A stretch of DNA of 64,000 nucleotides from Asterias rubens. Lineage: Eukaryota. Numbering within the stretch: the stretch's first letter is position 1; the number at the start of each line of letters is the position of its first letter. Positions 2,995-38,699 of this stretch are shown in pieces. Location: NCBI RefSeq assembly GCF_902459465.1, contig NC_047063.1, positions 13,392,001 through 13,456,000 on the forward strand, written 5' to 3'. The translations under genes were made by a program, and so were the position numbers. Below the pieces are notes generated by a model. That model did not search any database. It saw nothing but the letters and a program-made list of their open reading frames with translations, and was not told the DNA's origin.

Positions 2995-5890
2995 GTCCCA
3001 TTGTCGCCAGCATTGATCGTCTCGTTAGCAGCAGACGCAGCGTTGTTATCGTCGGTGGAGTAATGGGGTCTGCTGGATTCATTATCGGCTCGCAGTCGAC
3101 TACGGTGTTACAGTTAACATTTTCTATTGCCATTCTATCAGGTAAGAATATACGTGACTTAATTCATTCTGATGATTTGTTTCAATGTTTCATTCGAATA
3201 CCAAAGGGCCGGGGAAGATTTGAGGTTCAAGTTGTGTTGTCACCATCTTCCTGTGTAAGATTTACATTTAAAGCATCTGTTAATGCTCATGCGCAGCACA
3301 TTGTTGTCCATCGTTTACGTTTAAAGGTAGTGGACACTATTGGTAATTACTCAAAAAAGTAATTTTCCACGAATTTGATTTCGAGACCTCAGACTGAGAA
3401 GTTGAGGTCTCGAAATCAACCATCTAAATGCACACAACTTTGTGTGACAAGGGTATTTTTTTCTTTCATTATTTTCTCGCAACTTCGATGACCGATTGAG
3501 CTCAAATTTTCACAGGTTTGTTATTTTCTGCATATGTTGAGATACACCAAGTGAGAAATCTTGTCTTTGACAATTACCAATAGTGTCCAGTGTCTAGTGT
3601 CAAGTATTCTGTTTGAATCAAATAACAACAGCTGCGGCATTACCATCGGTAAAATGCAGTGAAATGGAGTCGAACACCGCGGAGCGTTTTTTTTTTTTTT
3701 TTTTTTTCATTTCATTCCATTTTATTTGCCAGCAAACATGAAAAAACACAAGTATTAAACAAATTGCCCATCAAAGAATTACAAGAACAAGCTATAATGG
3801 TTAATAAGAATACAATATGTAAAAACACAAGCAAATTACTGCGAAACCTGGCCTGGCCGCGGGAAGATATCAGGATTGTGTAGGAAACACCTCCAGTAGA
3901 ACACAAAACACTGGAGACAAAACAAAAGACAAGAACCCTGGCAGGGAAAGCCAATAGCGACAGAAAATCACTTACAAAGTGGCTGACCTTTTGGTTCAAG
4001 ACAACAATCGAAAATTAACATGACAAAACAAACCCTCCAGTGTATTACCCACCATCAAGCCAAGCAAGGCAACTCAGAAATAAAAGACAAGCAAAAAATG
4101 CCAATAACACATAATAATTTAAACAAATAAAGGGGTGAGATTTTGATTTCATTTGCGATGATGCATTGATTGTAAACAATCCATTCTGCGGACTTGTCCA
4201 ATAGTCATGTTTTTAGACAAAAACGGCAATATCAGCATATTAAGCAGAATGAGCAGCAGTGTCAGCAGCAGCAGTAATAGCAGCAACATCAACAGCAGCA
4301 ACGACACAAACAGCAGCAGAAGCAATCACATTAACACCACAAACAGCAAGCACCAGAAAACGCCAATTTCCAAAGGAATCAGATCGCGATGAAATAGTTG
4401 GTTGGGGTCGGTTTATCGATTTCCTCATCTTCTACAAATCGTTACTTTTCAATGAGACTTTTAGCTACTGTCTCATTCTTTTTCTCTGCAGGTATAGGTA
4501 AAGCTTTGAGTATTTTCCCCTGCAATGGTGCTCTGGCGTCCTGCTTCACTGACAACTATTCCGATGCAATTGCGTTAGTAGGATCAAGTATACCAATCTC
4601 GATGATCGTGTATGGTCCCCTGACACAAATACTTCTGGATACATACGGCTGGCGTGGAACCATGCTGATAATGGGTGGTATTACTTCCAACCTTGTAGTT
4701 TGTGGTGCATTGCTTAAAACTCCTGCAGTAGCATCACCAACAGATACAGAACAGTACCAACAGGTACCAAACGATGCAGCGAACGGTGACATTTCAACGG
4801 AGGGAGACGACATTCCTTGTGCTAAATCTCACCATGGAAAGTGTTTGACGATAAAGGAGAACATCCAGCGTGTCTTTATCTCCATGGACTTTAAATTACT
4901 GGCAAACACAAGATTCATATTTCTAACTGCGGCAATGAGCGGCTATGATTTCTGCTTCGCTGGGTGGATAGTGTACATGGTGTCACACGGTATATTCCAG
5001 GGGCTGAGCAGTTACCAAGCTTCACTGTTACCAACATCATTCGGGATTGGATACTTCATCGGCAAGTTCGCAGCTCCTTTGTTGGATCGCACCCGGTTCA
5101 AGCTTCATACATGCACATGGGTTTATCTTGGCTGCGTCCTCATGTGTGCCTCGTACCTCACCGAAGCTTTCATTGTACCGTTCCATGTGCAGATGATCGT
5201 TACGGGTTTCATTGGAATAGGACAAGGCATTACATCGCAGTCACATGACGTCCTTGTACGGTTTTTGACGTCCGTTGATCGGCTCGTAGCTGTGCTGTGC
5301 TGGCAGGCGCTTATAGGTGGATTTTGTGGGATTGGAGGTGGATTGCTAACAGGTTGGTATTAATTAAGCACGTTGGACATAGTTTTAAAGTTTTTTTTTG
5401 TGTTATTTTAAAATATAATAACTAACTCATCTCAATGACTTCGATTATGATTATGAATCTTACAACCAAGTACATGTTGATTACTTACAAGAGACAATAC
5501 TTATTCTAGTCATTGTGAAATCAGCGGTTAGCTTAACTGGTATCAAACCTGCCACCTTCTTTTTGCCAGTTCTGCAGCCTTGACCATGATGCTTTTCCCT
5601 CCCGAAAGCAACAGAGTAATACAATTCTGAGTCATGGGGACTCATTATAGACCACCTTACAGTGGGCGAAAAACACACTGACGGGAACTGAATCTTGACT
5701 ATCACAATAAAACACACAATTAAATGAAAACTATGTCATGTTTTTCCGTTGTTTGCTTTCAGGGTTGATTTACGAATGGACAGGAAGTTTTCAAGGGGCT
5801 CTCATTATGTACAGTGGCATCATGCTGATCTCGATCCTGTTGTTTTTCATATATGAACAAATAACAAAGCGAGAACAAGACCAATGCTAG
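2995..5890 (+). CDS. SLC16: SLC16/monocarboxylate transporter-like MFS protein, paralogue 1 (exons 2-4; exon 1 not in window)
   Basis: Exons 2995-3141, 4492-5352, 5763-5890 with GT-AG sites and phase-1 junctions, collinear with paralogues 2 and 3. MCT motifs LLDTYGWRGTMLIMGG and GLIYEWTGSF. Confidence 0.88.
3321..3597 (+). mobile_element. TTAA-flanked (Kolobok-like) MITE family A, internally deleted copy
   Basis: TTAA-AGGTAGTGGACACTATTGGTAATT ... AATTACCAATAGTGTCCAGTGTCT terminal inverted repeats; same family at 46017, 48664, 53421, 63057. Confidence 0.8.
3686..4135 (-). mobile_element. Probable 3' UTR/tail of a LINE in antisense orientation within MCT1 intron 2
   Basis: On the - strand it ends AATAAAATGGAATGAAATGAAA followed by poly(A) (poly-T run from about 3688 on +). 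Confidence 0.4.
4245..4360. repeat. Degenerate (CAG/CAA)n low-complexity tract in intron 2; similar tracts at ~14720-14845 and ~15560-15640 in paralogue 2
   Basis: AGCAGC/AACAGC-rich run visible directly. Confidence 0.7.
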
Positions 5891-9290: not shown

Positions 9291-9619
9291 CAAAAAAAAA
9301 AAAAAAAAATCATGGCTCTCATTTTTGCGTGACGTCACGCCAATATGGCTGATACGCTCTTTGTAAACACAATTTACTGTTGCTACTTTTTGTACCCGTT
9401 TTGTATTGGTTTTGGCGATGAAATTCGTTCTTAAATTTGGAGCCTTGTGTGGGAAAATGTTATGTACTTCTCTGCCACATGCAAAATGTCATGTAGGCCC
9501 TATATATTATATGAAACACTGTGCTGTGATAGTAGTGGATTTTTTTTATATATATTTGTTTATTAAAAAACGTCTATGGGTGTGTTTCTTATGGTCAGCC
9601 ATGACATTCATACGTTTCT

Positions 9620-10100
9620 TGTTCTGTTTGTCCATTAGGGTGGACCTTAAGTGTTTGACGTTACATAGTATGGTATCTTGTAACTGTTCAAACTCTTCAA
9701 TAGAGCATGACTCCTGGAGTTGAGACTCAGTGTTTGTTATCTCAAGTAACTGATTATCAATGAATTGTTGGCATTGATTTTCCAGCAACTTGATCAAACG
9801 GAAAGACGTATTAGTGAGTGTCTTGTTCCATTTCTTCAAAAAGGATGGGTCAAGGTCCCCAAAGGAAGGGGTACACTTGATCTGTAGGCCTTTGGGAATG
9901 ATACGGGACAAACGATAAAAACGGTAGTTATCAAGATGTGACATGTAACGGGTGTTCTTTTCCTTAAGCTTACGAAGCTTGCGGAAAGTGCACTTGGTGT
10001 CGGGAGCAAGTGCCATAATAGATGGGGGAATACAGTCAAGGGGAAATATCTTAAATCATTCCTGTGGAGAGAACGGGTTATAAATCCTGTACAAAATTGA
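9620..10100 (-). mobile_element. Penelope-like element 5' fragment (N-terminal ORF region, truncated)
   Basis: ORF from ATG 10016 with SHLDNYRFYRLSRIIPKGLQIKCTPSF..WNKTLTNTSFRLIKLL, resembling PLE N-terminal domains. A splice acceptor (TTCTCTCCACAG, AG at 10063-10062) lies just upstream of the ATG. Confidence 0.6.
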
Positions 10101-10104
10101 TTAT

Positions 10105-13100
10105 TAATTAACAGACGTGAAAGCAAAAAGTAAAATAAACCTGCGAAAGCATAAGGAATGTAACTTTGATGTGAATTATTGTTTGCGTACAGCACGGTGG
10201 CTTTTGACATCAGTCATGAGTAAATTTGGTAAATTGCTGACAGTTCATCGTATGGATGCCCGGCGCAAAACCACACTCCTAATGCACACCCATAAAGATT
10301 TAAAGAAGGCTTTGCATCAAGCTCATGCAAAAATTCGTTTGCTGAGGTTAAAGCAAAAAGATTCAAGTGATTCCTCTCCACCACTTGCAACTGATGCAAG
10401 CACCAATTTTAATTTGTCACTGGAGCACACCATCCCAGAGATAGCAAGGAGATTAAAACTTCAGTCAAGAACAGTCACTGAATACTATAAGCAAAATCCT
10501 TTGGCAGTTGTTGAGTTTAATTACGAAAAATTGCTTGAAATGATAGACCCTGTCATATTCAACTTTATATCTTTCATTACCATGAGTGACAAAGAGCAGA
10601 GGCATGCACATTTTTCTGATTTCCAAACATATGCACTTCCCTCTGCTGTAAGTGATCAAGCAAAACTTCAGCGGTAAAGGCGTTTGAATGCTATTTTGAT
10701 CTTGCACTTCATTTTGAATGAGTGCAATAATTACCCTTTTCACATTGTGACTGCAAACTGCATACGTCGCTTATCAAATTCAAGTAAACTTATGCAGATG
10801 TTTAACAAGGCTGCACTTTGTTTCTCCACATGTATGACTTATTTTCACAGAGATACATTGGATAGATTTCTTGAAGAGGTTAAGGAAAGTAGATCTGCAA
10901 ATAATAAACTTTCTACCTTGCATAAATCTTCCTTTACTATCCTCTCAGTAGATAATGTAGATGTACTTGCATCATATGCAGCAGTTACTTCTAAAGGTTT
11001 TGCTAGAAGCTGGCATGGAACATCCATTATGGCTCAGCAAACAAAGCCTTCAGAATTATTGTCTGATGTGGAACTATTATCAGGTAATAAGACATCTGAC
11101 TTCTCAAACATTAATATCTTTGGTGATGGAGCTTGTTTCTATCGGTGTCTTGCAGTTTTTGGAGATTCAAATTTACTGAAATGTCCAAGAAACTCGGTTG
11201 GACTTCCAACATTTCTTTATTAATTAGGCAAGGAGTGTGTACTGTTTTAGAAAACCATGTAGGTATTTTTGAATTATTACCAGATGCGGAGAGACGGCAC
11301 CTTTTAGAAGTAGATTCAAATAAGTCGTATCCAGATTTCATTTCTCGAATTAAGGATGACATAAATGCTGGTACTTATGCAGGTCACCTTGAGATTTGTG
11401 CTGCGTCTTATGCTACCCAGACTGCAATTAGAGTAAACCCAAAAATCGGCACAGAGTTGAAAGAAGTTGCAAGCTACCCTGTTGATAAATCTGTTTTGCA
11501 TAACGATTATCATATACATGTATCTTGTAAACACCTAGTTCAGTTACGTTGTGTGGTCATTTCAATCTTCTGTTCAAAGATTGTTGCAGACCTGTCGGTA
11601 TTGGATCACTTGTCACTGATGAAGCAATGCCCCTTATTTTTGACCGCGCGAGGGCGCTATAAATAGTATTTTGATCACTTCCGGGGGTACACGCGATTCG
11701 CCCTGCACAAATTAATAGGCGTTCTGTCACTTTTGTTGCGCCGTAGTTTCAATTTGCTTTAGAGGTGGATTATAACGGCTCCTTTAAAAGTCTTATTGTC
11801 TGTGATGGATTAGATGTCTGTGGTTATAATGTGTTCCAATCTTTAAAAACTGTTTTGGGTATGAATGAATATACCCCCGGAAGTGATTGAGAGCGCCCTC
11901 ACGCGGTCAAAAATATGGCCCATTGCATCTGGTAATATTTTTGATGATTGGCAACTGCCAAAGCATACAAACATTAGCTTTCAGTTGAGTCTTATTCATT
12001 ATTTCAACAGTAGCACTGACATTCTTTCAGAATTGTTTGATGATATCAGTGATACCAGTGACATGAACGAAGAGACTCAATTACATGGCACTCAGGTAAA
12101 TTTTGATGGTGCAACAGTTACATGTAACAAGCCAAAGCAAGTAGTAAAAACTGAATTGAAGTCACTAAAGATAGTCAGTCCAGTCATTTTGTTCACAATC
12201 ATGAAGAGTCTGATACACAAATTTGGCTCCATGTACAAGAGTGTTTGTGTTCAGTTGTTCAAGTTTATTCTATTGACCGTGACATTGCAATGATTGGTCT
12301 GCCATTGCAGATAAGCAACAAAAATGTAATAATTCAGTACAGAGCCAAGCCTGGTGATGTTAAGTGTTTACATCTGCAAAAGTTCAAAGATTGTTTACAT
12401 AGAGATCCTGATCTAGCTGGTCTTGTTGACAAAGGCTTGGATGTGTGTAAGATTATTCAAGTCATATTTATTTGTAGTGGCTGTGATTTTGTGTCGTACT
12501 TTGTTCGTTTAGGAAAGCGATCATTTTTCAATACATTTTTTTAATATGCTGCATTCATTTGTGGATTGTTTACGGAAAACACTGAAGGGCTGCTTTCAAA
12601 CACCAACCTTAATGAGGATGATGATCTTGGGTTATTAGCATTTTACCGTTTCATTGGTTGTGTTTATTTCACAGCTCACCGTAGCTGTCTGAACAAATAT
12701 ACATCTCCTGTGGAACTGTTTTAGACTCTAGATTACCCAACTAAGTATGAGTGTCATATTAAATTCCTTGATATAATACGTAAGGCTACCCAGGTCGAAA
12801 TTCCAGTTGAACCTAGTTAAACTGGGTTTAACTGGAACTAGTTGAAACCAGTTGATAAACTAGTTAAACACAGTTAAAACCAGTTGGTTTAATATGGAAA
12901 ATGGACAGACACCAACTGGTTTATAATTTCAACCTAGTTGAACACAGTTAAACCTAGTCCAAACCAGTTGGTTAATATGGAAAATGGACGAGTTTGATCA
13001 TTATCCAGTTGAACCAGTTGACCCCAGTTAACTAGGTTCAACTGGAATTTTGACCTGGGTACTTGGAAGGGGACTTACGAAGATGAGCTACTTCCTTCTA

Positions 13101-13426: not shown

Positions 13427-13548
13427 GTGCGCAGTGACTGCACACACACAAAAGGAAACAGTACGGAATGTTGACGTGATGAGTGCGCAGTGACTGCACA
13501 CACACACACCCACACCCAAGGAAACAGTACCAAATGTTGACGTGATGA
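13427..13548. repeat. Two-unit tandem repeat (56 and 66 bp) upstream of paralogue 2
   Basis: GTGCGCAGTGACTGC(AC)n..AAGGAAACAGTAC..AATGTTGACGTGATGA repeated at 13427 and 13483. Confidence 0.85.
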
Positions 13549-13710: not shown

Positions 13711-16700
13711 ATGGCTTCTCAACGAAGACCAGTTCACCACCAGGACAGGGATCCTTGGGGTTGGGTTGTTGTGGGCGCAACATTTGTCGCCTTTTTCATC
13801 ACATACGGAAATCTGAAGGCTTTGGGTGTTCTCCTCCTAGCCATGCAGAATGACTTCAATAGTGACCTGTGGATAATTGGTTGGATGGCCGTTCTATATA
13901 ACTCAATGAGTCTCCTCTCCGGTAAGACATTTATGCGTAGCCCTTTATCAAAAACTTTACCTGAATGGGAAAAGTACTATATAACTCTGACCTTAACAAT
14001 TAAAGCGGTTCGAAAAGAAGGGGAAAAACGTTAAGGGAACCCGCACTGTTTGCAATTCGATTTCCATGTCCAATTAATTACAGTATTATATTGACACGTA
14101 AATGATTCCTAAGAGCAATCCTTCGGAACCGGAGTTTTTGGTTAAGTTTGATAATAATGAGTGTACAACAGAAGTGATTCGTTTATTATTAATAAACGTA
14201 TAGCATTATTGAAACCGAAGACTGACTCGTAACGACTTGTTGTGTTTAACAGTTTTACTAATGTTGTTTGTTTACATGTCAATTGTAACAATTGTTGAAG
14301 TGTTTTTTATATTGCGAAATTTGTGCACGTTGGTAAGGTTTAATAAGCGTTTATTTTAGATGCTAAAATCCAACAAGAAAAGTGATTTGAGTGAGAGGGT
14401 AGTTACAAACCGTGTACTGTCTTTAAAATTATATCTCCCTTGTTTTTAATGAATGTATTACTGTTTTGATGAAGGTCCTTTTGTTGCAAGCATTGACCGT
14501 CTAGTTAGCAGCAGACGCTGCGTTGTTATCGTCGGTGGAGTACTGGGGTCGGCTGGCTTCATCATCGGCTCGCAGTCGACTACAGTGTTACAGCTAGCTC
14601 TTTCTATTGTCATTCTATCTGGTAAGCAAATAAATAAACAAACGCCTGGATATTAAAACAAACCTGGCTTGTGTCTGAACACCTAACCAAATATGTTTAA
14701 TGACCGAAACTGAGAGCAACCAAAACAGCAGCAAGGCAACAACAACGGCAGCAGCTAGCAGCAGTAGCAGCACCAGAAGCAATAACACCAATAAGCACTG
14801 TACGCAGCAACACCGGTAGCAATAGTAGTAGCAGTACAGCAACTAGACTTGATTCAAGTCCCATTCTCGTGTGAGAGGTCCTTCATGCATATCACTCCAA
14901 CATGCTCCAACTTACTAGCAAACAACGTGGGATACACAGTACAGTGCGCGCTCGTCGTCAAAGTGCACGTTGTTATTCGAAAATCTCCCCAAATGGGGAG
15001 ATGTACAAAACCAATGGGAGCGTAGAAGCGCTGCCATGTCGGTAAAGTATTCATTGTACCCTGTTACATCACAGTAGAAGAGGTTGTAAGGCACGCGTCT
15101 ATACGCCGCGTGCGCGTGGGGCGGGTAAACTCATTAGCAGGCAAGGGGGTGTCGGTGTCATAAGTCGTTTTATTGCACTTCCCAAAATTCATCTTTTGCA
15201 AACAAAACCGACCCCAGTGTATGTTACAACGTATTAACTTAAATTCAAATGAACATTTAGTGCTTTATTTTTTTTTATAATTAATTGGTTATTCAAAAAT
15301 AAATTTCAATCATCAACTAAGTACTTAACCCACAAAAAATAATGACAAATGAACTAGTTTTTTTTGTTTTGCATTTGATTGATCAAAACGTATCACGTAG
15401 CAATGTTACATATTCATAAGTGAATACATTTACATACCCGGCGACTGTGACATCGTCAAGTCCCTGCCCCGCATGCGGAACAGGTTGGGAAATGATGCAG
15501 AGCATCACAAAACAGTAGTTTTCATGGGGTGGCACGGGATTGGGACTTGAGTCAAGTCTACACAGCAGCAACGCCAGCAATAGCACTAAACCCGCACCAC
15601 ATACAGAAGCACAAGCAGCAACAAATGTGAGCAGCATCAATAAGAGACTCTACAAATTTTCAAATGCAATTCAATTCAATTCAATTCAATTTTATTGAAT
15701 TGAATTGAATTGAATTGAATTGCATTCAATCGATGAATTAGTTAAGTTGGTCGGTGGAATTAAATATTCCTCTGTAAATGACACGTTTGACTAAAGTAAA
15801 TTGTCTTGTTATACAGGTCTTGGTAAAGCTTTGAGTTTTTTCTCCTTCTTTGGTGTTCTGGCGTCCTACTTCAGTGAGAACTATTCTGTAGCTATTGCAA
15901 TATCAGCATCAAGTATACCAATCTCGATGATCGTGTATGGTCCCCTGACACAGATACTACTGGATGCATACGGCTGGCGTGGAACCATGCTGATAATGGG
16001 TGGTATTACTTCCCACATCTTAGTATGCGGTGAATTGCTTATAGCTCCTGCAGTATCTTCACCAACAAATAGAGAACAGTACCAACAGGTACCAAACGAT
16101 GCAGCGGATGGAGACGACATTTCAATGGAGAGATACAACAGTAATTCTGCCGAATCTCACCGGGGAACGTTTTTGACGATAAAAAGGAGCATTCAGCGTT
16201 TCTTTACATCTATGGACTTTGAAATACTTGCAGAGAAAAGATTCATATTTCTGACTGCGTCAATAGTTTGCGTTGATTTCTGCTTCAATGGGTGGGTAGT
16301 ATACATGGTGTCACATGGTGTATTCCAGGGGCTGAGCAGTAACCAAGCTTCGCTGTTACCAACAACCTTTGGGATTGGATACATCCTCGGCAAGTTCGTG
16401 GCTCCTCTTACGGATCGCACCCGATGCAAGGTTCCTGCCATCAGATGGATTTATCTTGGCTGCGTCCTCATGTTTGCCTCATATCTCACCGAAGCTTTCA
16501 TGACACTTTTCCCTGTGCAGATGATCGTCACATGTTTCATTGGAATGGGGCATGGTATTGTATCACAGTCACGTGACGTCATTGTGCGGTTTCTGACGTC
16601 CGTTGATCGGCTCGTAGCTGTGCTGTGCTGGCAGGCGCTTATAGGTGGATTTTGTACGATGGGAAGTGGATTGCTAACAGGTTGGTAATATAATGTTACT

Positions 16701-17395
16701 TTGGTTTGGAGATGTTATGTGCAACGTTACAAATTGTGTTTTCTCGCCTCGGCGACTTCCTTTCATGCGAATTCACTTACTCGCCTCTTTGACTTTGATT
16801 ATTGGTATATTGCGCACTATATAAATTGTGATTCAGTTAACTAAAGACGACAAACCTTATCCTAACTATTATGTGAAATGTGGTTAGCTCGCCCGTTTAG
16901 AACCCCGCACCTTCTATTTGCCAGTCCTGGGGTGGATTTCACAAAGGTAGTCCTAACTTAGGACTAGTCCTAGGCAATGCTAAGAGATAGGACTCGTCCT
17001 AAGTTAGGACCAGTAACTCATCCTAACTTAGGACTGGTCCTATCTCTTAGCATTGCCTAGGACTAGTCCTAAGTTAGGACTACCTTTGTGAAATCCACCC
17101 CTGCAGCCTTACCAGTTGACCAAGGCGATTTGTCTCCCTCCCCAAAGGAACACAGTTCTAAAGTTCTGAATCGTGGAGACTTTTTAAGACTCCCCTTACA
17201 GTGTGCGAGCTCTGACGAGAATGGGCAATCACAATAATACTCATGTTATTGTGTTGTTTGCTTTCAGGGTTGATTTACGAATGGACAGGAAGTTTTCAAG
17301 CGGCTTTAATTATGTACAGTGGCATCATGCTGATTTCCGTCATACTGTTCTTCGTATATGATAAAATAACGAACCGAGAACAAGACCAATGTTAG
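13711..17395 (+). CDS. SLC16: SLC16/monocarboxylate transporter-like MFS protein, paralogue 2, complete (449 aa)
   Basis: Exons 13711-13921, 14475-14621, 15817-16680, 17268-17395 total 1350 nt, open to TAG. TM1 motif WGWVVVGATF..GNLKALG is typical of SLC16. Confidence 0.92.
15663..15726. repeat. Inverted pentanucleotide microsatellite (TTCAA)n/(TTGAA)n forming a palindrome
   Basis: AATGCAAT(TCAAT)4-TTT-ATTGA..TTGCATT; arms about 28 bp. Confidence 0.9.
16930..17100. mobile_element. 171-bp fold-back MITE (PIF/Harbinger-like, CTG TSD) in paralogue 2 intron 3
   Basis: Arms of about 80 bp with 2 mismatches; CTG at 16927-16929 and 17101-17103. Paralogue 1 intron 3 shows the empty site (GCCAGTTCTGCAGCC). 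Confidence 0.93.
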
Positions 17396-23795: not shown

Positions 23796-26700
23796 CATCT
23801 CATCTCATCATCTAGGCATTGTCCATCCACTGCAGGATGTAGCCCTCTGTCAGATCTTTCCAGGTATGCCGTTCCTTTGCTATCCTTGTCCAGGTCCCCC
23901 CCACCAACTTTGTTATGTCATCCCTCCATCTTTTCTTCGGTCTGCCCCTGGATCTTTTTCCTACTCGGGGTTGCCATTCTGTGGTTCTTATGGTCCATCT
24001 GTTATCTGTCATTCTTGACACATGGCCTGCCCACTTCCATTTCATTGTGCTGACATATTGGATAATGTCTTTGACTTTTGTTATATCCCTAATTGCTTGG
24101 TTGGGTATCCGGTCTTGCAGTTTAATCCCTAGCATCCTTCTTTCCATTGCTCTCTGCGTGGTGGCTAATTTCTTGTTTATCTGTTTGGTAGTTGACCATG
24201 TTTGGCATCCATATGTTATTGTTGGGAGTACACATAGGTCAAACATTCTTTTCTTCAGGGAAATTGGTAGTTGTTTGTCGCATAAGATTTCTTTGTATCT
24301 TCCAAAGAGACCCCATCCTGATTTGATTCTTATGGATACTTCTTCTTTGGTTGTGTCTTGCATTTTTAATGTTTGGCCAAGATACTTGTATTCATGCACT
24401 TTCTCTATAATGTCGTTATCGATTCTGACAAGACTTTGGGAGTCGATGTTGGTCATATATTTTGTCTTTCCTTTGTGCATTTTAAGTCCCAGTCGGTTGC
24501 TTTCTTTGTGGAGCCTGTTAAATTGTCTTTCCAGGCTTTCGATGGAGCTAGCGAATATAGCCACATCATCTGCAAATCGTAGGTTTGACAGCATTTCTCC
24601 ATTGATGTTTATTCCTTCCTCCTCCATCTCTGCTTTCTTGAAAACTTCTTCAAGAGTAGCGTTGAAGAGTTTTGGAGACAGTGGGTCGCCTTGTCGGACC
24701 CCTCTGGATATCTTGATTTCGGTTGATATTTCATTGTCAAGATGAATTTTAGCTGTAGCATCTGAATATATATCTTCAAGGAGGTTGATGTAGGTTTCAT
24801 TTATTCCTATGTTCCTTAATGCTCTAAACATTGCTGGATGTTCTATGGAGTCAAAGGCCTTTTCGAAGTCCACAAAGCCGATGTATAGTGGTAAGTTGTA
24901 TTCGTTTGTCTTCTCTATGATCTGGTTAATTGCTTGCATGTGGTCTGTTGTTGAGTATCCCTTCCTGAATCCTGCTTGATCTCTTGGTTGATTCTCATCT
25001 AAGATCCTTTCTATTCTGTTGTGTATTACTCTTATGAATATTTTGTACTGGTGCGAAAGAAGGCTTATTGGCCTATAGTTCTTAACTTCGCTTTTGTCTC
25101 CCTTCTTGAAAAGTATGATAATTTTCGCTTCCTTCCAGTCTTTTGGAATCCTTGTTTTGTTCAGAATGTCATTGAATAAGGTGACCATTTCTTGAATGAT
25201 TACTTCCCCACCTACTACCATTATATCAGTTGTCACTTGATCAGTGCCTGGAGCTTTGTTTCTTTTCATTTGGTTTATAGCTGTTTGGACTTCCGAATGT
25301 AGAATTGGTGGTATTTCTATTGCATCCGGGCTTGGTATATTTGTATCTTCTCCTGTCTCTACTTCTATTTTTGAAGCGTACAGTTCTTTGTAGAAGTCGG
25401 CACATATTTCCAGTATTTCTGTTCTGTCTGTTGTTTTCTCGCCATTAGGTTTTTTCATTGAGCAGATTTTTGGTTTGTTACTGTCCTTGTCGATCAGCTT
25501 TGGACCCCTTCCGCTTTTAATGATTGATTCAATCTTTTCTGTCCTTCTTTTCCTTTGTCTCTGTCTCCTTTTCTTTTTGACAAGCTTACTTGTTTCGCAA
25601 AGCTCAATCTTCTCATGTAGTGGTAGATTGCTCTTATTTCTCAGAGACTTTCTTCTCTGGTCGAGTGTTTGTATTTCTAGGTCATCCTTTGTTGGAACCT
25701 GCTTCCTAGTATCTTTGTCTCGTTTGGCTAGTTTGGTTGATTCCTCTTTTATTATATTGTTGATTTCCTCGCATCGTTCATCTATATCGATGTCTTTTCC
25801 TTTTAGTACCTCGAAACGGTTCTTGAGGTTCAGTTGGAATTTGTCCTTGTTCTCCCATAATGCTTGGTTGTTTACCATCATGGGTTTGGTTCTTCTGATT
25901 GTTTTCAGTCGGGCTAGTTTTTTGCTGATGGATATTTTTGTTCTCACCATCCTAAGTGGTCGCTTCCAATATCTACCTTGGTGATGACTTCGCAGTTGTG
26001 TACGATACCTCTCTGGCTGACTAAGCAGAAGTCGATTTGATTTGTTGTGATGGCGTTTGGGCTCCTCCATGTCCAGTATCTATAATGCGGTTTGTTGAAT
26101 AGAGTGTTGGCAATGATGAGTTTTTCTTGGATGGCGAACTCTATCAATGTATTTCCTCTATCGTTCCTTGTACCTGTGCCAAATGGGCCAATGCATGAGA
26201 ATGTTTCATCCTGTTTTTTTATTCCAATTTTAGCATTGAAATCTCCCATTACAATGGTGTATTCTGACAGTCTGTTGTCCTGTAGTACCTTGCTTAGGTC
26301 CTCGTAGAATGATTCAATGTCCTCTTCACTATAGTCTTGAGTTGGTGCATAGACTTGCACAATTGTCATTGTCCCTTCTTTGATGAGGTTTATATTCATG
26401 GAAATTATCCGGTTTGAGTGTTTAGTGAATCCTTTCACATGATCCTTAATTCTTGGGTGAATTATGAAGCCTAGACCTTTGTTGTTTGGATCTTCTTCCA
26501 TTTTCCCTGAGTCATATATCCATATCCCGTCGTTTGTTTGGGTAAGTCCCTCACCGTGCCTTTTGGTTTCACACAACCCTATTATGTCCCAATTGAAGTC
26601 TTCTATTTCTTCCAGAAGTCTTTCTAGATCATCTTGTGTTCTTAAGGTTCTTGTATTGTATGTACAAATGTTCAGGTCGGAGTTGCCTTTCCTCTTTCTT

Positions 26701-27229
26701 TCAGCCCCACAACTCCCTGGTGAAGGGTTTAATCGTGACGCGTCATGTTGAGGTCTTCCCTCTGAATTTGGATTTGGCATTTTCCTTTGCTCCATTTGGC
26801 CTTGAGCGTTACGGCCTCTCTTTTCGTTACTCTTCATATCTGACAGGTTTTTAGCCATACACCGACGCGCTGGCTAGACGTGTTGCCGGTGGGTTTTCGA
26901 TAAGGTGACCTTCCTGTAGCCTTTGACTGCATCCTGCTGTCTTTCCCACAAGGCAGTGGGTGGGTGGGGTGGGTTGAGGTTATTTATGGGCGCCTCATAC
27001 TCGCCCGGTGATTCCTTCATTGAGCACGATGAGGTATTTAGTTAGAGTAGCTGCCCCACACAGACTACTCCACCTCACTCTCGGAAAACACCGCCAGTTG
27101 GTCCGCGACTGCTTATTTGGCTATTTCGCAGCTAGCCTCCATATCTGGAGGTCACTCCACTATCCGCCACCTGTGGACGCGTGAGGTTGGGGATTGGTCG
27201 CCCCCATTTGTTTGTAAAACAAATCCCTC
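23796..27229 (-). mobile_element. Full-length RTE-clade LINE with 11-bp target-site duplication
   Basis: TSD AAATGGGCATT at 23785-23795 and 27230-27240; (GATGA)n tail; ~370-bp 5'UTR; single EN-RT ORF. Confidence 0.92.
23812..26858 (-). pseudogene. RTE EN-RT polyprotein, split by one frameshift near 25954-25955
   Basis: EN motifs TYNTRTL, GLCETKR, QVYAPT, GDFNAK, NQIDF, GSDH. RT motifs YRPISLL, GVRQGDPLSP, FADDV. Removing 2 nt after GSDH joins the frames (GSDH-RMVRTK). Confidence 0.9.
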
Positions 27230-27492
27230 AAATGGGCATTAATATTGCATAATTATTTGACTCTCAATTTAATCCTATGTGCAAGTCCGTGGCTATGGTG
27301 TCGTGTTACAGATATAATTGCCTTGAACTTTGGGAAAATACCCCCTTAAACTTGAGTTTCTTATAATATTTTATAACAATGTCTACGGTTAAAATTTGCT
27401 ATAACTTCCTGAAACGAAAATGCAAGAACCCTCAACTATGCTTATTTGTTAGGCGATCTGCAGTAACATAGAATTCAAACTGCCTCTAGCTA

Positions 27493-27665
27493 CCGGGCAA
27501 CCGGTGGTCTAGTTGGTATGACACTGCTCTAGAATTGCAAAGGTCGTGGGTTCAAATCCCACCCGAGTTAAATGCCTGTGATTTTTTCACAGGATTCGGG
27601 AAAGTACTGAGTATACAGTGCTACACACATCAGTATATATGGGTAAAAACCAAAAACTAATATTC
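27493..27665 (+). mobile_element. tRNA-derived SINE immediately upstream of paralogue 3
   Basis: A box TGGTCTAGTTGG, B box GGTTCAAATCC, non-tRNA body. A 3' fragment of the same family lies inverted at 29781-29883. Confidence 0.75.
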
Positions 27666-29006
27666 GATCTTATGTAATTGAAACCTTTTATTTTGTAGGA
27701 ACAAGTATCATTAACACTTTAGCAGCTCAGCTGTGCGTTATGGCATCTCAACGAAGACCAGTTCATCACCAGGACGAGGGCCCTTGGGGTTGGGTCGTTG
27801 TGGGCGCAACATTTGTCGCCCTTTTCATCACGTTTGGAAATCTAAAGGCTCTTGGTGTCCTCCTCCTAGCCATACAGAATGACTTCAATAGTGACGTGTG
27901 GATGATTGGTTGGATGGCTGTCCCGTATAACTCAATAAGTTTCCTATCCGGTAAGAAACTTACGTGACCTTGTCAACATTTGAACCTGGCTTGAACGAGC
28001 ACAGTAAACAATACCCAAGTTAACAATTAAAACGATTGCCAGCAGAGAGCCTGCACTGTTTGCAATTTGAGTTTAATGTTCAATTTCGGTATTTTTGACG
28101 CATCAATTCTTCCCAAGGCAAGCATGCCGAGAACAGGGGTGTCAGATTAAGTTTTGTAGTGATGATCTGTTCAACAAGGTGTGTTTTGTGAACAACAAGG
28201 ATGTTTGATTATTATTAATAAACGTGGATCATTGTATAGCCAAGGACTGACTCGCAACAGTTTGTTGTGCTTACCAATATTACAAATGTTGTGTCTGTAC
28301 GTGTCATTTGTCATACGTTCTCAGGAAAATAACTCGTTCATCAAACTGTTTCATATAATTGCCCGCGTTTATAGAAGCCATTTTTGTTATATATTTCAGT
28401 TGCGACAGTCATAGCAAAGTGGTTTTAGGTGAAAGGGTGGTTACAAGTTTTGTACTTTGTCTTTACGTATGAATCTTCCATGGTTTATGGGTTCAATACT
28501 GTTTGGATGCAGGTCCTATTGTTTCCAGCATAGACGGTCTCGTTAACAGCAGACGCAGCGTTGTTATTGTCGGTGGAGTACTGGGGTCAGCTGGATTCAT
28601 CATCGGCTCGCAGTCGACTACAGTGTTTACAGTTAACACTTTCTGTTGTCGTTCTATCAGGTTAGAATAAACTTATACTGATGATAGGTCACAATATTTA
28701 TTTGTTTCACAGCGTTCTTTGAATCTCAAATAGCCGAGGTGAAGATTTGAGGTTTCGTTAAACACCATCTTCCCCGAAACAATTTGTGTCAGTAAAGCAC
28801 CGGATTGTCATTGTTCCCATTTCATTTCGGTTGTTTTAAAAACAATAATAGCAAGATACAATAAACACTAGGTGTTTGGCTTCCGGAGTACAAGCCTGGG
28901 CGAAAAAAAAAATCATTGCAGCTTGTTTTATTCTCAAAACACGTAATAAATGATCGACATGAAAAAACAAAACAAAAATCAAAAAAACACGCGGTGCCAA
29001 ATTTAA

Positions 29007-35539: not shown

Positions 35540-37920
35540 TACTTTCTTCAGCTGTGGGATATATAGTCCTTCCTCCCATTGGTGGACATCATACAGTCCT
35601 TCCGAGATGGGGGACATTTACAAGTCCTACATCAGTTGGGGACATACAGTCCTTCTGCAGTTGGGCGACCCACAGTTTTCTCCACATACAGTCTTATTTA
35701 AGTAGGGGGACATACAGTCCTACAGTTAGGGGAACATACAGTCCTTCTCCCATTTTGAGACATATAGTCCTACTTCAGTTGGGGGACATACAGTCCTTCC
35801 CAGATGGGCGACATTTACATGTCCTACATCAGTTGGGGGACATTCGGGCCTACAGTCTTTTTTCAGTTGGAGGACTGTGACATACAGTCCTTCTCCCATT
35901 GGGGGAAATACATCTACAGTTGGGGACATACAGTCCTTCAGTTGGGACACATACAGTTTTTCTCCACATACATTCCTATTTAAGTAGGGGGACACAGTCC
36001 TACTTCAGTTGGGCGACACACAGTCCTTCTTCAGTTGGGGGACACACAGTCATACTTCATTTGGGGGACATATACAGTCCTTCTTCAGTTGGGGGACATA
36101 CAGTCCTTCTTCAGTTGGGCGACACACAGTCCTACTTCAGTTGGGGGACATACAGTCCTTCTCCCGTTTGGGGAAATACAGTCATTCTACAGTTTGGGGA
36201 CATACAGTCTTTCTTCGGTTGGGGTACATACAGCCCTTCTTCAATTGGGGACATACAGTCCTTCTTTAGCTAGAGGCCATGCAGTCCATTTTCAGTTGGG
36301 GAACATTAGTTTCTTCTTCAATAGGGAGACACAATCCTTTCTTAAGTTGGGGACATGCAATCCTTCTCCTATTGGGGGTCAGTCCTTCTTCAGTTGGGGG
36401 ACATACAGTCCGTCATCATTGGGGGACATACAATCCTTTAGTTTGGGGACTACTCAGTCATTCTTCTGTTGATGGACAAATAGTGCTTTTTAAATTGGTG
36501 ACAAACAGCCTTCCGCTGGGGGACATACAGTCCTTCTCCCATTTGGGGATATCAGTCATTCTTCAGTGGGGGGACATACAGTCCTTCTTCAGTTGGGAGA
36601 CCTACAGTTTTTCACCACACAGTCCTATTTAAGTAAGGGGAAATACAGTCCTATTTCAGGATGGGGAAATACAGTCCTTCAGTTGGGGGACATACAGTCC
36701 TTCTCCCATTGGGGACATACAGTCCTATTTCAGGATGGGGAAATACAGTCCTTCAGTTTTGGGACATACAGTCCTATTTCAGTTGGTCTTCAGTTGGGGG
36801 ACATACAGTCCTTCTCCCATTGGGGGACTAATCATTCCTTTTTCAGTTCGTTTTCATCAGTTGGGGGACATACAGTCCTTCCCCCCATTGGGGGACATAC
36901 AGTCCTACTTCAGTTGGTCTTCAGTTGGGGGACGTCAGTCCTTCGTCCGTTCGGGGACATACAGTCCTACTTCAGTTGGGGGACATACAGTCGTTCTCCC
37001 ATATGGGGGACAAACAGTCCTTTTCTGTTTGGGGACATACAGTCTTTCTTCAGTTTGGGGACATTCAATCCTTCTCCCATTGGGGGACATACTGTCCTAC
37101 TTCAGTTGGTCTTCATGAGTTGGGGGACATACAGTCCTACTTCAGTTGGTCTTCATGAGTTGGGGGACATACAGTCCTACATCAGTTGGGGGACATACAG
37201 TCCTTCTCCCAATGGGGACATACAGTCCTTCAGCTGGGGGGACATATATATGCTTTCAGTTCGGGAACTAACAATCCTTCTTCAATTGGCGACATACACT
37301 CTTTCTACAGTTGAGGGACATAATATAGTCCTTCGTCGGTTCGAAGACCTACAGTCCTACTTCAGTCGGGGGATAGAGTCCCTACTTCAGTTGGTGTATC
37401 ACAGTCATACTTCAGTTGGGGGACTTTTCAGTTTAGTGACATACAGTCCTACGTTAGTTGTCGACATATAGTCCTTCAGTTTAGTGACATACAGTCCTAC
37501 GTTAGTTGTCGACATATAGTCCTTCAGTTGGGGACATACAGTCCTTCTTCAGTTTGGCGACATATAACCCTTGTTCAGTTGGTGATATACAGTCCTTCAG
37601 TTAGGGGGACCGCATGCAGCCCTTCTTCAGCTTGGCGACATAGAGTACTCCAATTGGGGAACATACAGTCTTTCTTCAGTCGGGGGGCTAACCGTCCTAC
37701 TTCAGTTGGGGGACACAGTCCTACTTCAGTTAGGGAACACACAGTCCTACTTTAATTGTATTACATACAGTCCTTCTGCAGTTGTATTTCAGTTGGGAAC
37801 TTTATAGTTGGTGACATACATTCCTACTTCAGTTCTACTTCAGTTGGTGACGTAAGTACCTTAATTGTTAAGTTGATGACACAGGACCCTTCATCAGTTG
37901 GTGGCATACAGTCCTCAAAG
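35540..37920 (+). repeat. Degenerate minisatellite array, ~23-26-bp unit CTTCAGTTGGGGGACATACAGTCCT(T/A)
   Basis: Unit visible throughout about 2.4 kb, with recurring variant blocks. Confidence 0.92.
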
Positions 37921-38699
37921 CGTGGTTGGCTCTATCACCCCTGCGATAGTCACACCTTCTTCAGCTGTCGGGTGTTTGTCAACTCCAATGGAATCGACTC
38001 AATCTGCAGTAGCAATTAGAAAATAAACCGTTTTTAATATTAATTTTGATAAACTATTTCGTGTCAAGTATTTGCTAAAGAATAGATAAAATTTGAATGC
38101 TGTCATGGAAGAAAATGCTTGTCCAGTTTAAATCAGTTCTGTATCCCACTGAATTTACACAGCATGACAAAACATTAGAACATAATTTTTGTGTTAAGTG
38201 TATTTTAAAGCATTTTCCCACCAAACCAAAGGAAGGGAATTCATGGATTGTTTCAAACTCTAATAATGTTAAACCCTCTAATATATTCTTATTCTGAAGT
38301 TTCAATTCTTTTGATAATTAGTGTATGGTCCTTTTCTTTTAAGAAATGATTCAAAGAGGCGACTTTTCTTCAAGTTTAACAACCGCTCTGTTGGTGGCTC
38401 TGATGCTTATTGGGGCCTGCTTTTGTCACCACTTCAAAAGAGACTGCCCAACTGAGTGAAGATTGAGACAAAGTTCTCTCTTCACATTTACACAATCTTA
38501 GTTTTGACCTCGGTGAGCTGGTTGTACAAGTTTGCTGTTGTATGATCTCAATTAATACAATAGATTTGCATTGTAGAACTGTCTGGACCACTTTTTGTTT
38601 TGTCAGACATCCAAAGACACATGCCAAAAGATACAAAGCGCCAGGTATTATTACTGCAAGGAGTGGGACGAAGTTTGAGATATAAGACCTAATCCTTAA

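Follow-up and report, generated by a model that had tools for sequence, protein, structure and literature searches.

A 64,000-nucleotide stretch of the Asterias rubens contig NC_047063.1 (positions 13,392,001 to 13,456,000 of the forward strand; hereafter the window, to whose first letter positions refer unless another contig or a protein is named) carries at 10117-12790 (+) one long reading frame in ruins, the relic of a transposase of about 2000 residues. In the middle of this frame lies an OTU cysteine-protease domain. The relic consists of the following parts:

10117..11223, + strand: transposase region upstream of and including the predicted RNase H strands β1-β2, matching residues ~268-617 of the Acanthaster protein P0164
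11104..11600, + strand: OTU cysteine-protease domain in three frames, recognized by its motifs and by a profile of its relatives
11629..11921, no strand assigned: nested insertion of 293 bp resembling a miniature inverted-repeat transposable element (MITE), absent in the paralog L007
11922..12152, + strand: poorly conserved linker following the OTU domain, ending at the deletion breakpoint 12152/12153
12161..12790, + strand: C-terminal two thirds of an XRN/XPG/FEN-like 5' nuclease, P0164 residues 1612-1822

The candidate first catalytic Asp of the DDE core is encoded at 10951-10953 within SVDNVD, and SWHGT (His 11014-11016) follows downstream. Forty codons beyond SWHGT the OTU Cys loop, IFGDGACFYRCLAV, is read in the same frame as the rest of 10117-11223; tgt at 11134-11136 encodes the Cys of GDGACFYRC. 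After a frameshift near 11205-11225 comes GTYAGHLEICAASY with the AGHLEI helix at ~11380-11400, and a second frameshift near 11510-11535 precedes the CGHFNLL strand, whose His codon is 11558-11560. An earlier note on this DNA had read Cys loop, AGHLEI helix and GHFNLL in this order from three frames, and its positions proved exact to the base. The nuclease part of the relic retains the motifs EESDTQIWLH, SIDRDIA and SGCDFVSYF and is interrupted by in-frame stops at 12542-12544 and 12722-12724; a further in-frame stop (10675-10677) lies within 10117-11223. Compared with P0164, the relic retains residues ~268-750 and 1612-1822. An internal deletion of ~770 residues (about P0164 843-1611) took away β3-β5 together with the second Asp, the insertion domain and the helix with the Glu, and also the initial third of the nuclease; at the ends, ~267 N-terminal residues and the CXC tail have been lost. 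A 97%-identical paralog of the window copy, L007, resides in different flanking DNA, lacks the insert 11629-11921 and runs on beyond position 12152 into linker and core. It was the comparison with this paralog that fixed the boundaries of the MITE and the breakpoint. The MITE has inverted ends of ~30-44 nt (GCCCCTTATTTTTGACCGCG... and ...CGCGGTCAAAAATATGGCCC; arms 11621-11664 and 11886-11929). It is flanked on both sides by AT, which may represent a 2-bp duplication. No second transposase copy was found within the window. The window copy is a dead, non-functional relic and can do nothing, because the core has lost two of its three catalytic acidic residues and the frame has suffered at least seven disruptions. 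The transposase fusion that the earlier note had seen at this place therefore stands as that of a relic, from which most of the catalytic core has been deleted.

Pfam was almost silent on the broken pieces of the window: PF02338, the OTU family of MEROPS C85-like cysteine proteases, was not found, and a single weak Otubain match fell on the Cys loop (E 0.18). The identification as OTU therefore rests on relatives. Searches of PDB sequences with single window pieces likewise returned nothing meaningful. A HMMER scan with window positions 10684-11220 retrieved 280 proteins, including ones of 1000-2200 residues, and by source name the relatives belong to Patiria, Amphiura, Lytechinus, Acanthaster, Branchiostoma and Owenia. 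From 20 relatives, the OTU blocks were aligned with the window excluded (alignment A3), and a profile hidden Markov model was built on this basis. Among the window's 2091 six-frame pieces the profile matched only three, in profile order:

10678-11220: profile positions 3-42, E 9e-16
11127-11663: profile positions 53-155, E 1.8e-25
11531-11659: profile positions 159-184, E 0.02

As the profile picks out exactly these three pieces, the OTU observation in the window is real and above chance. When the same profile was run against PDB sequences, every one of the 37 matches was an OTU-family protease, the best being OTUD5 at 2.8e-5, with OTUD3, otubains, nairovirus vOTUs and OTULIN among the others.

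PF02338 scores above its gathering cut-off of 23.3 bits in four relatives, P0003 (30.7 bits), P0006 (28.8), P0008 (31.4) and P0033 (40.7). In these proteins, the OTU domain directly follows the stretch that matches the window, and DUF6589 is found downstream in nearly all cases. P0165 stays below the cut-off with 19.5 bits and P0159 has no match; precomputed Pfam labels flag OTU in four of the ~15 OTU-bearing proteins listed. Since most members score below the Pfam cut-off, the fusion is easily overlooked. Of 18 proteins checked, 18 have the catalytic Cys, 18 the catalytic His and 18 an Asp or Asn at the second position behind it, and 15 of the 18 also have Asp at position -3 from the catalytic Cys. 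The Cys loop D-G-x-C-(L/F)-(F/Y)-R, the H-x-D/N motif, the Pfam scores of the four relatives and the predicted fold described below support the segment as a true OTU-family domain in the intact relatives. The OTU-family identity put forward in the earlier note is thus borne out by Pfam, by the profile against the PDB and by the predicted fold, all in relatives; the search for PF02338 that it had proposed is positive in four of these and negative in the broken window pieces.

In the intact open reading frame (ORF), a helical N-terminal region is followed by β1-β2, the OTU domain with its linker, the rest of the core, the 5' nuclease and a CXC zinc domain. Single intronless ORFs of this kind were found at three loci (L001 3348-9230, L009 3188-9202 and L010 10001-15985). 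A BLAST search against P0007 and a MAFFT alignment separated two classes of protein, one with a block of ~210 residues and one with 17-50 residues at the same spot. This spot lies between the invariant S(I/V)DNID...RSWHGTS and the series KTFI...LKCK...AD...GD...GDWH...DExHE, and the GD motif comes ~415-465 residues after the first Asp in proteins with the OTU block and ~160-215 after it in those without.

An AlphaFold2 model of P0164 residues 500-1300, made with an alignment of 26 sequences, reached a predicted local distance difference test (pLDDT) of 79 and a predicted template modelling score (pTM) of 0.65. In model numbering, strands β1 (25-32, with DNID) and β2 (50-58, with HGTS) are followed by the OTU domain (~75-250, ~175 residues), a disordered linker (288-340) and helices (365-414). 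Then come β3 (423-430) and α1, β4 (460-464) with the invariant GD465 behind it, β5 (486-490) with GDWH, an all-helical insertion domain and a helix (724-740) carrying DEAHE. For the OTU part of the model, Foldseek returned OTUD5, OTUD3, OTUD1 and viral OTUs at probability 1.0, and an exhaustive structural search with VIA-align gave OTUD1 at Z 12.4 for model residues 78-246, its OTU matches ranging over Z 12.4-10. For the core, VIA-align found Drosophila P element transposase (Z 10.6, 286 residues aligned in the range 1-761), Tn5 (Z 8.7), Hermes (Z 8.7), RAG1 and retroviral integrase cores (Z 7-7.6), and the integrase alignments of ~130 residues reach across the OTU domain from model residue ~19 to ~766. 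The core matches span both sides of the OTU domain, and the model thus predicts a DDE core of the RNase H-like kind that is split by the OTU domain at the link between β2 and β3. The DDE residues D29, D465 and E725/729 are conserved and placed by the model on β1, after β4 and on the helix, respectively. D29 and D465 are invariant in alignment A2, and DE.HE is present in every protein that reaches that far.

The C-terminal domain is characterized by the motifs IAEGMN, RILFDQ..SPK..E..RRD, NHEESDTQIWLH, S.DRDI and SGCDFVSYF. Its model (pLDDT 88.6, pTM 0.88) matches XRN1, XRN2 and Rat1 (E ~1e-6) as well as Rad2/XPG, EXO1, FEN1 and T5 flap endonuclease, and the domain is, on this predicted structure, a member of the PIN-like 5' nuclease superfamily of the XRN/XPG/FEN type. 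A PDB sequence search with the nuclease profile yielded nothing meaningful. The acidic motifs EGM, LFD, EESD, DRD and GCD are conserved, and we take all these acidic positions to have counterparts in FEN1. At the very end of the protein resides a Tesmin-type CXC domain (28.2 bits in P0164). DDE core, OTU-family domain and XPG/FEN/XRN-type 5' nuclease, which the earlier note had combined in one polypeptide, are seen together in intact relatives. A distant relative without OTU, P0171 (2252 residues), carries another accessory enzyme module, an N-terminal NADAR domain (residues 36-183, 64 bits) that precedes the same DUF6589 core and nuclease. In the literature searched, DUF6589 is named in a single paper, which is unrelated.

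Among known transposons, this architecture fits AcademX, and the label is one of architecture. Academ had no Pfam model in 2017 (PMC5751038). According to PMC10045372, which cites Kojima 2020, AcademX has a nuclease in place of the helicase of AcademH and produces target-site duplications (TSDs) of 3-4 bp. The family shares with AcademX a single ORF of great length, which encodes a DDE transposase of the RNase H-like type and, in the same protein, an XPG-type 5' nuclease, as well as short terminal inverted repeats and its hosts, marine invertebrates including echinoderms (Kapitonov & Jurka 2010 and Kojima 2020, as cited in PMC10045372 and PMC5751038). It differs from AcademX as described in the literature searched, where no OTU domain is mentioned for Academ, in that an OTU domain sits inside the catalytic core. 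Alternatively, the family could lie outside Academ, as a separate or P-element-like superfamily joining a DDE core to a 5' nuclease. The best structural match of the core, Drosophila P element transposase, speaks for this possibility, as does an Academ label given by architecture. We nevertheless consider it unlikely: the fusion of a DDE transposase with an XPG-type nuclease is the mark of AcademX in PMC10045372 (citing Kojima 2020), and Pfam found no family, and specifically no THAP domain, in residues 1-500 of P0164. The N-terminal THAP domain that marks the P element superfamily is thus missing despite the structural match of the core. Nor does the family show the Ginger1 plan of a Gypsy-integrase-like core (H2C2 finger, rve, GPY/F) with OTU at the C-terminus, since no member has an rve or integrase Pfam match and the OTU domain is internal.

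Ginger1 elements carry an OTU (pfam02338) or Ulp1 domain on a DDE transposase, with OTU at the C-terminus (Bao, Kapitonov & Jurka 2010, PMC2836005). These OTU-transposase fusions were already known and were missing from the protease passengers that the earlier note had named. Ginger1 and the present family have in common a DDE transposase and an OTU domain in one polypeptide and sister elements with or without the protease, and the hypothesis that ubiquitin-pathway proteases aid transposition or repair applies to both. Unlike the Gypsy-integrase-like core of Ginger1 with its C-terminal OTU, the core described here resembles P, hAT and Tn5, its OTU domain is predicted to interrupt it between β2 and β3, and the protein continues with a 5' nuclease. 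Helentron and Helitron proteins carry OTU or VTD deubiquitinase domains (PMC4224331, PMC9741609, PMC6431247). They, too, have a papain-like domain of the deubiquitinase type with conserved catalytic residues in a giant multi-enzyme ORF; however, Helentrons are rolling-circle RepHel elements and the family here is a DDE transposon. Activity has been proven biochemically for the VTD domains of Helentrons and Helitrons but not for transposon OTUs. In its predicted fold the domain matches OTUD1, OTUD3, OTUD5 and nairovirus vOTU (Z 11-12.4, root-mean-square deviation 2.4-3.5 Å over 129-144 residues), and it also has their motifs DG-x-C-(F/L)-(F/Y)-R in the Cys loop and GH(F/Y)(D/N) in the His strand. 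It is distinguished from the cellular OTUs and vOTU by an identity of only 14-23%, an extra helical segment between Cys loop and central helix, and its predicted insertion within the fold of another enzyme. A literature search on Academ together with OTU or XPG found nothing relevant and no text linking Academ and OTU; Repbase and the original Academ papers were outside its scope and prior cataloguing is possible. Likewise, no description of an OTU domain spliced into the middle of a transposase core was found in the literature searched, and the transposon protease domains described in the literature found are all terminal appendages. As far as checked, the family, in which the DDE core of an Academ-type transposase with a 5' nuclease harbours an OTU domain, adds a new form to kinds of element already known.

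A deubiquitinase function of the domain appears reasonable and plausible. The OTU domain would be an active ubiquitin or ubiquitin-like isopeptidase travelling with the transposase. It may strip ubiquitin from the transposase itself and so protect it from degradation, or it may do so on chromatin and repair factors at sites where the DDE core and the 5' nuclease would cause double-strand breaks. It is conceivable, albeit doubtful, that the nested domain is an active deubiquitinase (or ubiquitin-like protease) physically coupled to the transpososome, where it would erase ubiquitin signalling at excision and integration breaks. If true, this would be a built-in 'repair-signal editor' of a cut-and-paste transposon, acting together with the fused 5' nuclease. 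A different role for the domain, either as a cis-acting processing protease or as a catalytically silent ubiquitin-binding module, has to be considered. Viral OTU/PLP domains often both cut polyproteins and deubiquitinate, the multi-enzyme protein of 2000 residues is polyprotein-like and a disordered linker of ~50-90 residues follows the OTU domain, all of which speaks for a different role. A cut beside the OTU domain, however, would part β2 from β3 and so sever the RNase H core, the silent module is at odds with the fully conserved Cys/His/Asp triad, and the nearest structures are the cellular, ubiquitin-specific OTUDs. On balance, we regard either of these two roles as quite improbable.

The family is mobile. 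Identical copies of the P0165 protein are encoded on 13 contigs, six of which have common DNA up to one base, ...GCGGACTGACTG, and then six different 3' flanks. The termini were established by comparing these six contigs. The inverted 13-mer CAGTCAGTCCGCA, the reverse complement of that end, is located at L001:216. Both ends carry it, and the P0165 element thus extends over L001:216-10562 (10,347 bp). The same 13-mer was also found 2.9 kb upstream of the Acanthaster gene. Inverted-repeat searches for terminal repeats in L001 and L009 gave none, L009 shows no termini, and a metagenome scan for the element terminus produced chance matches only; two loci that it returned from human-gut metagenomes (L038 and L063) were left out when its matches were compared. 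Inside the element and ahead of the transposase lies a gene for a GDSL/SGNH esterase (L001:1539-2870; Lipase_GDSL_2, 35.4 bits), of which there is no trace in the window. In L009, a perfect 49-nt inverted repeat pair 328 nt apart (3200-3248 and 3577-3625) is located just inside the 5' end of the ORF for the 2004-residue transposase P0159. These observations bear on the idea that the relatives are domesticated host genes and the window a pseudogene of one of them, with no transposon involved. Chromosome-scale assemblies indeed list several relatives as single genes with the annotation 'uncharacterized protein LOC'. Identical P0165 copies with six different 3' flanks and terminal inverted repeats, the close paralog of the window copy in different flanking DNA and the decay of the window copy, which is that of neutral transposable-element relics, make this explanation very improbable.

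A maximum-likelihood tree was calculated for the core (26 rows, 514 columns, OTU and linker columns removed) and rooted at the midpoint. OTU-less proteins fall inside the OTU-bearing diversity, and well-supported branches force at least three changes of OTU state. The OTU-bearing members include amphioxus, annelid and echinoderm proteins, and in the OTU-less lineages the block is cleanly missing at the same spot. With the midpoint root, one old gain of the OTU domain followed by repeated clean losses would be the simplest reading. Mean pairwise identity is 0.38 for the OTU block, 0.17 for the adjacent linker and 0.47-0.59 for the core; the difference between OTU block and linker shows that the OTU domain is under constraint where it is kept. 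Sister lineages do cleanly without the block, and the OTU domain is therefore dispensable rather than essential. The many rearrangements of the window copy, among them a true MITE insertion 30 bp past the OTU domain, might raise the suspicion that the OTU-like stretch is private to this copy and does not belong to the transposase, having arrived as a piece of a host gene or as an independent nested insertion. This is refuted by the intact relatives: no fewer than 18 diverged proteins of three phyla, and intronless ORFs, have the block in frame and at the same position, and neither repeats nor a TSD flank it. The earlier note had placed the domain within the transposase and had proposed to look for intact copies; the OTU block is in frame with both flanking parts in such copies and occupies the same spot in at least 18 relatives. 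Copies lacking the OTU segment, which the note had named as evidence that would count against its reading, do exist as sister lineages.

All in all, we consider it likely that 10117-12790 is the relic of the ORF of an Academ-type (AcademX-like) cut-and-paste transposon with a nested, constrained OTU domain, for which a role as an active isopeptidase is inferred. Several points weigh against this assignment. L001 is the only contig with both termini, but its flanks do not match, the contig may be chimeric and no TSD was read. The Academ label is given by architecture, the nesting of the OTU domain is that of a predicted model with an alignment of only 26 sequences, and among the relatives that carry an annotation as host 'LOC' genes, some could have been domesticated instead of being mobile. 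In three proteins with OTU, the residue at -3 from the catalytic Cys is Cys and not Asp, and several lineages have lost the OTU domain and are apparently still intact. Finally, the activity of transposon OTUs has never been tested biochemically, as is stated explicitly for Helitron OTUs (PMC9741609).

Protease and deubiquitinase domains on transposons such as Ginger1, Helentron, MULE and Zisupton have been noted for 15 years. The family described here offers an enzyme domain that is predicted to sit inside the catalytic fold of a second enzyme, naturally occurring matched pairs that differ in the OTU module and could serve as controls, and recently active copies in the form of identical ORFs on many contigs. 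With these, the idea that transposons manipulate ubiquitin signalling at their own breaks becomes directly testable.

The surroundings of the relic yielded some further observations. Directly upstream of its truncated 5' end lies an ORF of 156 residues without a Pfam match (9546-10016, -), which may stem from another repeat that caused the 5' truncation. Just past the 3' truncation, direct and inverted repeat units of 49-62 bp that are 85-92% identical occupy 12787-13061 and 13427-13548. Exon-like ORFs of a major-facilitator transporter gene extend over 13711-17395 (+; MFS_1, 66 bits for 15801-16685), the first of them ~900 bp downstream of the end of the relic. Further away, AT skew is strong at 24001-28000 (-0.40 and -0.20), and a G+C-richer block at 36001-38000 has an AT skew of -0.17 and a motif recurring around 'ttggggacata', where tandem repeats are likely.

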